Source of the DNA: Phallusia mammillata
Lineage: Eukaryota
Assembly (NCBI GenBank): GCA_965637545.1
Contig: OZ281501.1
Span: 8,308,001-8,372,000, forward strand
Direction of reading: 5' to 3'
Length of the DNA: 64,000 nt
Under the pieces are notes generated by a model. It worked only from the letters and a program-made list of their open reading frames with translations, did not search any database and was not told where the DNA came from. The translations under genes were made by a program, and so were the position numbers. This document shows positions 16,989-19,900 of this stretch, in pieces. Positions within the stretch are counted from its first letter, which is position 1. Each line of letters begins with the position of its first letter.

Positions 16989-19900
16989 CTATAAGAAATA
17001 TATGTAAATCTAAAATATGTTGAAAGCTATATTGGGGCTGGGCTTGGGTTTCCAAGTTTGAGCAATATTTGTCAGTGGTGTGCTAGTTTATGCATGAAGG
17101 TGGGCAGAAATCTTAACACGAAACGAGTTACAGAACCATATTAAAACCACTCCTCTAAGCTTTACTGTCCGAAAAATAAAAATCTATTTTACTTGAACTT
17201 AAAACTATAATTATGCGCACTTTTTCACCATGGTTTCGGCAAAAAAGGGCTGATGTACAAGCCGTTTTGGCTTGCAAATTCGTACACGGTAAGTTTTGTC
17301 ACTGTTACTATGTGTTATGCTCACGTTGTTATGTGAGCCCTTACAGACAACTTAAGCTTCTGACATCACGAGGCGTTACTATGACAGCAACAGACAACAC
17401 CGCCATGCAACACCAATTACAAGAATAAGAAACTATAAATATCCGAATCACCCATGCGCGACCACACCGGCACGTGAGCGCATTGTTCATCACGTGACAT
17501 TTACGTAAATGCGTCGACCTTATTTCGTCACCATTGACGTATCTTGAAGCAGTCATGCGGAACGTGTCTGGTGGCAAAACACGTTTCAAAACGACACACC
17601 ATCTAAATATACGTGAGACCGACAAGAACATGCCACACAAACCGTCAAATAAGCCTTTCGGGTGGTTGTTTAGGGGGTATTGGGGTGGACTGGGTGATAG
17701 CCATACTCTCAGTCTGCTGGGGACTGTAAACCCCCCTGTTAGCACGTGCCCCACGTGCGTAACACACAGCTGATGTCACAACTGCTATTATTAAGATGAA
17801 GACAACAGCCCCAATGATGGAACCGACGATCGTCCACGGGTTGCTTTCCAGCAGTGATCTTACCTTTATGATAGGGTTTCTGTATTTTAACTTTTTTTGC
17901 ACATTCTAATGCATGAATTTCCTTGCGATTTAAAGTCGATGGACTGAACAATTTTTTACAAACGACGGGTTCGATGCGCAAAAAATTAAGCTATGGTGTC
18001 AGCGTCCTTTTGATGGATTCATGGTGATAGTAAAAACTTATAATGTGTAACAACAAATTTGGTCCAAAAAGGCAACGTACATTTAAGTTTGGATTTAAAC
18101 TAAGTAACAGCTAACGACTGTCAATTATTCAAAATTTTAGTAACTTGTGAACAATTTCAACACTCATTTTTTAAATGTAATTTTTCCTTGATATTACGAG
18201 TTTCTTATTGTGATGTCAAAATGACGTTTAAAACCATTTTATTCGTCATGGAAGTAAGTCTTACCGAGTCGCAAAATTCGCCGGAATATCCAGACATGCA
18301 TTGGCACATAGCTTTTGGATGCATTTCCCCTCCTGATGTCACGGGCTGTGTTACTACGTTACAAATCCCTCCGTTGTTGCATGTGTAGTTGAGACACGGG
18401 TTGGGAAACTCGCATGTGGCACCTAAGAACAAAATACCGCTACATGTACTTATGATACTGTGAAAACCAATGATAAACGCAAAACCGCCGCATGGTGATT
18501 CATTAATTTAAAATGTCAAAAATATGGGCAATCAGCCAAAGATTACTTTTCGCAATCCGCGTGTAGGAACATTTTAACATATATGCACATATGATTGCAT
18601 TTGCACAACTGAAACAATAGAAATAGTGGGCTTAAAAAGACTTGTGACAGAAAAGCAATAATAATTCCATTTTAGGAAGTTTGTAGCAGCACACATGGTT
18701 GCCTCAAGCAATAAGGAAAACTTCTGGCTGTTCGGTTAAATCACCACAAAGAAATGAAGTGTTCAAGTGGATTAAAACATGGTTTTGGGTTTTTTCACAG
18801 CCGGAGGATCCAGACACATAGAAGGCAACGCGACCGGTTCTTTATTGCCATCGTGTGGCCGATCCAACTGTATAAGTCAGGTGATTTACCTGCATGTTGT
18901 TCTGTACATTTGCAGCTGTAAGCCGGCATTCCTTCACGATCCAATTCCACTTGACATTTGCCATTGTTGGCGCATAAAGAAGCGCTTCGCTTCGATAAAC
19001 ACAGGTTGTTGTATTCACACGTCACACCGATAAAACCTGACGGCAGAGGAAAATATATTTTACCCGAGATTTCAAAACCAGCTCTAATTTCATAATTCTT
19101 TACTTTACACATTTAATGAGAAATATTATACTGGTAATAAGTTTTTATTTATGTGTTATTTATTACTATTATTTTAATTGTTTACTTATAACAAAACAAC
19201 TTAATTTTGTAAACTGCATTTACCTTTAATACATGTACATTGGTGACCGCTTCCGTTGTCATGGCAACTACCGTTATTTTGACACGGTGAACTCGAACAT
19301 TGACCAATCCACGTTTGACACGTCACTCCAGTATAGCCTTGTGCGCATGCGCATTGATGCGACATCACCGTCTGCAATTGAAATTTAATTTTAAAGCAAT
19401 AGAAAGCAAAAGTTTTTACGTGAAACTTACCTTATTTGCAATACACGTCGAATTGTTTTCACACGAGTTATTTTCACACGGGTCCATCTCAACGTCGCAT
19501 TTTCTTCCAGTAAACGGCAAATTGCACGAACACAAAAACGAAACCTGTAAGGTAATTTTGTTTTGGTCTTTATACAATGGCGTAATGTAACAGTTTATTA
19601 GAATTTGCCAAATTATGTTTGTTATCACTGGCCTATGTTATAACATCAATTCAACGTTTTCTTAATCAATTTTAATAAATTGATGTCGTTTTCGAGGCAA
19701 TTTTTTGTATCATGAAGTATTGAGTAAATACCAAAACCCGTTCCACGTAACATAATGTATGCATGCTAAGGGCAAGAAACAGGGGTTAATCATCAGTACA
19801 GATGATCGCAGTTCTAATCTAGCCGTTAACATTAAACACAATATGGTGTTCCTAGATGTTTTAAGATTACATGTACGACGTAACAAAATATCGGTGGCCA

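Follow-up and report, generated by a model that had tools for sequence, protein, structure and literature searches.

The Crumbs tail of Drosophila and the tails of vertebrate CRB1/CRB2, which comprise 37 aa with a FERM-binding motif and a C-terminal ERLI, are the closest described relatives of the element considered here, a short cytoplasmic tail behind a single transmembrane (TM) helix that is encoded by an alternative exon (exon A) of a Crumbs gene in the ascidian Phallusia mammillata. This gene lies on the minus strand of a 64,000-nucleotide stretch (the window; GenBank assembly GCA_965637545.1, contig OZ281501.1, positions 8,308,001 to 8,372,000), and its following exon, exon B, encodes a second tail; we refer to the two as tail A and tail B and number their residues on the tyrosine Y10. 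In Drosophila, T6 and T9 are the sole residues whose restoration rescues in vitro phosphorylation of the tail by aPKC (atypical protein kinase C; Sotillos 2004, PMC2172211), aPKC fails to phosphorylate a T6A T9A tail in vitro, and over-expressed non-phosphorylatable Crb acts as a dominant-negative (PMC2172211). According to the summary of Wei et al. 2015 given in PMC6928914, phosphorylation of the Crumbs tail by aPKC disrupts the binding of Moesin and not that of PALS1. Y10 and E16 are essential, with Y10A abolishing Moesin binding, mutation of Y10 or R7 abolishes the recruitment of Moesin and beta-heavy-spectrin, and both tail motifs contact the FERM domain in the Moesin complex.

Tail A resembles these proteins in its single-pass TM helix and short tail, but differs from Drosophila Crumbs in having N6/V9 in place of T6/T9 and in being one of two alternative tails of one gene. 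The engineered Drosophila Crb T6A T9A is likewise non-phosphorylatable at these positions, but is artificial. A natural likeness is found in Caenorhabditis elegans CRB-1, the tail of which is devoid of the putative aPKC-phosphorylatable residues (PMC2172211) and keeps Y10, E16 and the PDZ-binding motif (PMC4359734); T6/T9, although conserved in fly and mammals, are therefore not defining for the Crumbs family, although the worm tail is constitutive rather than one of two isoforms. The mammalian splice variants CRB3A and CRB3B, which end in ERLI and CLPI, respectively (PMC4278252), are comparable in that alternative splicing alters the cytoplasmic end of a Crumbs-family protein. However, splicing of CRB3 changes only the extreme C-terminus and its PDZ-binding motif, whereas in the present gene the stalk, the helix and the whole tail are swapped and both products retain ERLI and the FERM-binding core. 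The full-text literature on ascidian Crumbs and on Crumbs tail isoforms, a search that did not cover gene-model databases, yielded no exchange of stalk, helix and tail that keeps the FERM-binding core and ERLI.

Upstream of the tail exons, the minus strand carries many Cys-rich EGF-type open frames, out to about 48.5 kb, and other open frames there have laminin-G-like ends (C-terminal motifs, judged by eye). Pfam PF00008 (EGF) matches one upstream exon, and single laminin-G exon fragments gave no Pfam match above threshold. The EGF exons are linked to both tails by spliced RNA contigs. Parts of the region are contained in 20 public runs of the same organism, and contigs of four runs (X3, X5, X7 and X17) from four studies were placed on positions 15000-20900. 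At every joint of these contigs the minus strand shows GT..AG, and the contigs therefore derive from spliced RNA. The joint that skips exon A (18265->16988) occurs in all four runs, in X7 within one 2062-base contig (record 22) that comprises the 3′ untranslated region (UTR), exon B and four upstream EGF exons. The joint that includes exon A (18265->17863) and the joint from exon A to exon B (17643->16988) were both recovered from X3, X5 and X17, and neither from X7. In three independent studies, inclusion lies between about one quarter and one half. A sequence-word search placed exon A in studies P1, P2 and P6 and found it essentially absent in P3 and P4, whose runs without exon A words still contain about 29% of the larger stretch.

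Since the joint 17643->16988 splices exon A to exon B, exon A is no alternative terminal exon but an internal cassette that brings a stop of its own. An earlier reading of the letters alone (the sequence-only reading) had implied alternative terminal exons, which these contigs contradict; the splice choice between two tails that it proposed is present in the RNA contigs and differs between samples. The donor after 18265 (CG/GTAAGA, with the slash marking the cut) is common to both isoforms and in phase 0, matching the phase-0 acceptors of exons A and B. Exon B starts at 16988, about 650 bases downstream of exon A on the same strand, behind a strong acceptor that consists of a pyrimidine-rich tract followed by TAG/G. 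Exon A is preceded by an AG at 17865-17864, and its stop stands 2 nt before its own donor (TGA-CG/GT, with the GT at 17642-17641), such that the coding sequence of exon B and the shared 3′ UTR are untranslated in the exon-A-containing mRNA. Nonsense-mediated decay follows a 50-55 nt rule; with its stop within 2 nt of the last junction, the exon-A mRNA should therefore escape this decay.

Other gene models fared less well. An out-of-frame alternative acceptor (atacag) upstream of exon A was rejected, 17863 being the sole acceptor seen in contigs. One low-depth contig (X3 record 10) spans the intron between exons A and B unbroken (16960-17671) and represents either pre-mRNA or intron retention, which would leave the tail A protein unchanged in either case; a retained-intron model was set aside on the same grounds, retention occurring at low depth only and without effect on the protein. 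The assignment of tail B to a separate CRB3-like gene is ruled out both by the contigs that join tail B to EGF exons and by the presence of a real CRB3-like gene on another contig.

The frame of exon A begins with a short stalk, which leads into TM helix A (about 17836-17759; hydrophobic, about 26 aa from W10 to Y35 of the exon, ending Cys-Tyr) and then tail A (36 aa counted from position 1; 36-37 aa behind the helix), followed by a TGA stop. The probability of an open 72-codon frame is about 1.2% under the local base composition. Tail A reads R4 A5 N6 R7 G8 V9 Y10 S11 P12 Q13 Q14 T15 E16 ... PPERLI and tail B reads R4 A5 T6 S7 G8 T9 Y10 S11 P12 S13 K14 Q15 E16 ... CERLI; by translation, the residues and the lengths (36 and 46 aa) given in the sequence-only reading are exact. 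Residues G8, Y10, S11, P12 and E16 and the C-terminal ERLI are invariant in 13/13 aligned tails, both A exons included, and tail A combines one TM helix and a short tail with the FERM-binding core G8/Y10/P12/E16 and ERLI, as expected of a Crumbs protein. The chain of the Drosophila Crumbs tail in PDB 4wsi/4yl8 can be aligned with tail B (E 0.012), the gaps, which total nine positions, falling between the motifs that bind FERM and PDZ domains. This alignment bears out both the insert in tail B and the Drosophila reference sequence that had been quoted.

The two tails differ at the residues that matter for aPKC. The Crumbs acceptor threonines T6/T9 are absent in tail A and present in tail B, where T6 has Arg at -2 and -3, and tail A retains R7 as in Drosophila, a position at which tail B has Ser. 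None of the six Ser/Thr in tail A has Arg/Lys at -2, -3 or -5, and S11 and T24 are each followed by Pro. Given N6/V9, and given that its remaining Ser/Thr all lie outside basic contexts, tail A probably escapes phosphorylation at the canonical aPKC sites in this species. Since R7, G8, Y10, S11, P12, E16 and PPERLI are kept, we infer that tail A should still bind FERM proteins and the PDZ domains of PALS1/Par6. The description of tail A as an aPKC-insensitive FERM binder, as put forward in the sequence-only reading, is thus plausible for this species.

Tail B also has a wider setting. Tunicate B-type Crumbs tails (16740-16877 here; P0001-P0005 and P0012) all measure 40-52 aa, as opposed to the 37 aa that are near-universal elsewhere, and most have Cys or Ser immediately before ERLI. 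They have a long linker and, in most, a W-x-E-L-K-P-P-P motif ahead of ERLI. The stretch linking the FERM-binding to the PDZ-binding motif thus seems to have expanded specifically in tunicates.

A six-frame search of the whole 240 Mb assembly with either exon returned the exons themselves and one further locus, the CRB3-like gene, which encodes a short Thr/Pro-rich stalk, a TM helix and a 39-aa tail. This tail has G8, Y10, S11, P12, E16 and PPPPERLI together with F6 and K9, so that both threonines are absent and 2/3 of the Crumbs-family tails of this animal are without them. There is a Cys cluster at the helix boundary, and Pfam gave a weak, sub-threshold Syndecan match over the TM and juxtamembrane region. 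Across the TM helix and tail, the CRB3-like gene shares 38% identity with exon A, but it is a separate small gene on another contig; pairwise identities among exon A, exon B and this gene are all 31-39% and favour neither exon B nor this gene as the source of exon A.

To evaluate the conservation of exon A, presence was judged at two ascidian loci, L027 and L011, the contigs of P0001, P0002, P0004 and P0005 being too short upstream. P0012 lies on a 574-kb contig from a second, distant ascidian, and its locus there, L027, has a matching exon layout of last EGF exon, A-type exon and B exon. The L027 A tail reads S5 K6 R7 G8 S9 Y10 S11 P12 Q13 A14 T15 E16 ... PPERLI, and its exon ends with TGA, two bases and a GT donor, as in P. 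mammillata. In tblastx comparisons of the two species the A exons are collinear and 39% identical over 67 aa, and the B exons are 46% identical over 52 residues and 50% across the whole exon; overall, the A exons are about 36-39% identical versus 46-50% for exon B, and the EGF exons about 45-55%. When 13 tails are placed in a tree, the A exons of the two species form one group with support of 97/99, on long branches. Both A exons keep an S-N-x-W stalk motif, the boundary Cys-Tyr, a short linker of canonical length, R7, Q13 and T15, and both are without an acceptor at position 6. L027 thus repeats the exon together with its location, its phase and its splice signals, as expected of a conserved alternative cassette.

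Based on this comparison, exon A is old, predating the split of P. mammillata from the L027 species. It is also under protein-level constraint, since the frame is open in both species (a chance of about 1.2% in each) and since the Crumbs-invariant residues, the acceptor phase and the arrangement of stop, two nucleotides and donor are all kept. The coding frame of exon A is not a product of chance, given these odds, the matching phases, the splicing observed in RNA and the recurrence in a second species. Protein databases hold tunicate B-type tails as exon-sized open frames only: an exhaustive representative search with exon B gave 11 short exon-ORF (open reading frame) matches and no full-length ascidian Crumbs, and a word-based protein search gave one match for exon B and no candidates for exon A. 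Two metagenome scans, one started from exon A and one from the B-type alignment, gave no match.

The splice signals of exon A deserve a separate remark. The exon starts with GTAAGA (17863-17858) right behind its AAG acceptor, an arrangement in which the acceptor overlaps a perfect donor-like hexamer, and it has a poor polypyrimidine tract and a weak donor of its own (CG/GTTTGT). The donor of the L027 A exon (TG/GTTGGT) is likewise weak. The overlapping acceptor and hexamer, the poor tract and the weak donors fit a regulated cassette exon.

Taken as a whole, the evidence leads us to favour, with modest confidence, an explanation in which exon A is a conserved alternative cassette within this animal's one large Crumbs gene, with a tail that should be competent for FERM and PDZ binding and an insensitivity to aPKC that is specific to the lineage. 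When exon A is skipped, the last EGF exon is joined to exon B and the protein carries TM helix B and the 46-aa tail with its canonical binding region. When exon A is included, translation stops within it, exon B turns into 3′ UTR, and the protein has a different stalk, a different TM helix ending Cys-Tyr and a tail of canonical length, 36 aa, whose FERM binding would not be released by aPKC.

Several observations weigh against this explanation, or against its aPKC component. Tail A alone gave no match at E<=10 to the solved Crumbs tail (the Drosophila chain) because it is strongly diverged. In L027 the A tail has S9 within K-R-G-S-Y, the R-G-[S/T]-Y context of Drosophila T9. The sequence-only reading had named conservation of N6/V9 as a check, and the outcome is divided: at position 6 the acceptor is absent in L027 as well (K6), but at position 9 it is present. 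Its proposal that T6N/T9V deprive tail A of aPKC sites is accordingly plausible for this species, whose tail A has no basophilic Ser/Thr, and only partly extends to L027. Since V9 is not kept there, complete insensitivity to aPKC would be lineage-specific and not the conserved purpose of the exon; aPKC-insensitive FERM binding is plausible here but is not a conserved, defining property of the A isoform. L011, a third ascidian represented by a Logan contig of one run, has no A exon, and its intron between the EGF and B exons (3009-3273) measures merely 265 nt; some lineages can therefore do without exon A. In their B exons, L011 and L027 share 67% identity. By run, inclusion varies between none and about half, with junction-contig depths for exon A included and skipped of 57.8 and 61.7 in X3, 10.7 and 14.1 in X5, 14.2 and 47.5 in X17, and 0 and 11 in X7, contig depth being a crude gauge of the isoform ratio that we read only as this range. 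Differences between runs alone do not establish regulation by tissue or stage. Finally, flies in which non-phosphorylatable Crb was knocked in are reported to be viable and without any polarity defect that could be discerned (Cao et al. 2017, cited from PMC6020718, Hong 2018), and Crb phosphorylation by aPKC accordingly appears dispensable in the living fly.

The alternative that survives best, though we consider it improbable, places the functional difference elsewhere in the swapped module, with the loss of the threonines as incidental drift. Candidates are the stalk and TM helix, the boundary Cys-Tyr (which might act in palmitoylation or as a signal for sorting) and the 36- versus 46-aa spacing of the motifs, through which trafficking, membrane sub-domain or the geometry of PALS1/Moesin binding could change. 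Such a difference would account for the exchange of stalk, TM helix and tail together rather than of the tail alone. It would also agree with the features shared by the A exons (S-N-x-W, C-Y and the short linker) and by tunicate B tails (the long linker and W-x-E-L-K-P-P), and spacing could matter given that both tail motifs touch the FERM domain in the Moesin complex. However, a boundary Cys is not peculiar to the A exons, as some B-type tails also have Cys near this position (P0002, P0004 and P0005).

A stricter proposal is that the splice choice is a phospho-switch, in which B is an aPKC-releasable FERM binder, A is constitutively FERM-bound and selection maintains the distinction; we regard this as unlikely. 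It draws on the absence of T6, T9 and basophilic Ser/Thr from tail A, on the B tails of both species, each of which carries a position-6 acceptor with Arg at -2 and -3, on the non-phosphorylatable position 6 of both A exons (N and K), and on the fly and mouse biochemistry of aPKC on the Crumbs tail (PMC2172211, PMC6928914). However, S9 of the L027 A tail lies in the R-G-x-Y context of Drosophila T9, and B-type tails vary at the same two positions, with N6/T9 in P0001, T6/A9 in L011 / P0003 (Ala at position 9 of the L011 B tail), Q6/E9 in P0005 and S6/T9 in L027, such that other tunicate B tails are without T6, without T9 or without both. The normal knock-in flies also speak against it, and the in vivo role of aPKC phosphorylation of the Crumbs tail is itself disputed, with the over-expression results for it and the knock-in flies against it. 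It is highly improbable that exon A represents a duplicate in decay, or mere noise of splicing, with no protein function, since its fast divergence (about 36-39% versus 46-50% identity for exon B), its absence from L011 and the one run without inclusion are set against a frame open in two distant species, the conserved tail residues, acceptor phase and stop-plus-2-nt donor, and an inclusion between about one quarter and one half in three independent studies.

Table 1. Features of the Crumbs gene in the window, of the corresponding L027 locus and of the CRB3-like gene
Feature	Position	Strand	Basis or content
Last EGF-like exon of the Crumbs gene	18265..18420	-	contig joints 18420->18888, 18265->17863, 18265->16988
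Cassette exon A, 221 nt	17643..17863	-	translation; RNA contig joints 17863<-18265 and 17643->16988
FERM-binding motif region of tail A, R4 to E16	17708..17746	-	translation, alignment
Tail A N6	17740-17738	-	
Tail A R7	17737-17735	-	
Tail A V9	17731-17729	-	
Tail A Y10	17728-17726	-	
ERLI PDZ-binding end of tail A with TGA stop (17647-17645)	17645..17659	-	
Intron between exons A and B, GT..AG	16989..17642	-	joint 16987->17642 (cut +1) in three runs
Exon B coding part: stalk, TM helix B, 46-aa tail B, CERLI, stop	16737..16988	-	translation; joint 18265->16988 in 4/4 runs
Tail B T6	16862-16860	-	
Tail B T9	16853-16851	-	
Shared 3′ UTR of both isoforms	16028..16736	-	contigs end at about 16028-16046 (X17 record 2, X3 record 9)
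L027 last EGF exon			phase-0 donor GTG/GTAAGA
L027 A-type exon	about 320 bases past the EGF exon		phase-0 acceptor; stalk, helix ending Cys-Tyr, 36-aa tail
L027 B exon	about 1.9 kb past the A-type exon		phase-0 acceptor
CRB3-like gene	G000 contig C7:22233633-22233968 (L002 1363-1698)	+	short Thr/Pro-rich stalk, TM helix, 39-aa tail

Other observations concern the surroundings of the gene and the rest of the genome. An Rfam scan of 14500-21500 found no family. An intronic copy of a very young and very abundant interspersed repeat occupies 20605-20900, and Rfam gave no family for it. Genome-wide, a first look yielded about 3000 candidates, and the 40 copies that were scored share 96-100% identity across about 295 bp. 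The summed depth of RNA contigs on the repeat is very high, reaching about 2000, with many loose ends. The stretch 15000-15400 behaves similarly in the read table. On the forward strand of G000 contig C7:11715289-11718276 (L026 3290-6277) an uninterrupted 995-aa frame encodes a PTPN3/PTPN4-like protein with FERM, PDZ and tyrosine-phosphatase domains, which may be a retrogene since it is intronless within an intron-rich genome. Its FERM domain is the sole contiguous full one found, and the protein is not known as a partner of Crumbs. The F3 lobes of ERM-like and 4.1-like type that were inspected in the genome are intron-split or of uncertain identity.

The pair of isoforms is real and conserved, and concerns a well-known polarity protein; its interpretation as a phospho-switch is unproven. 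The design of exon A, a TM-plus-tail module with its stop 2 nt before the donor, swaps the membrane anchor and the tail without changing the 3′ end of the mRNA. One gene that naturally gives Crumbs with and without the acceptors, in sample-dependent proportions, is a clean genetic handle. More speculatively, and with considerable doubt on our part, the pair may represent an ancient regulated module swap of ascidians between an aPKC-releasable Crumbs (B) and a coupling to FERM proteins and actin that is aPKC-resistant or weakly switchable (A). If true, this swap would constitute a natural experiment on Crumbs phosphorylation in chordate epithelia and lumen formation.

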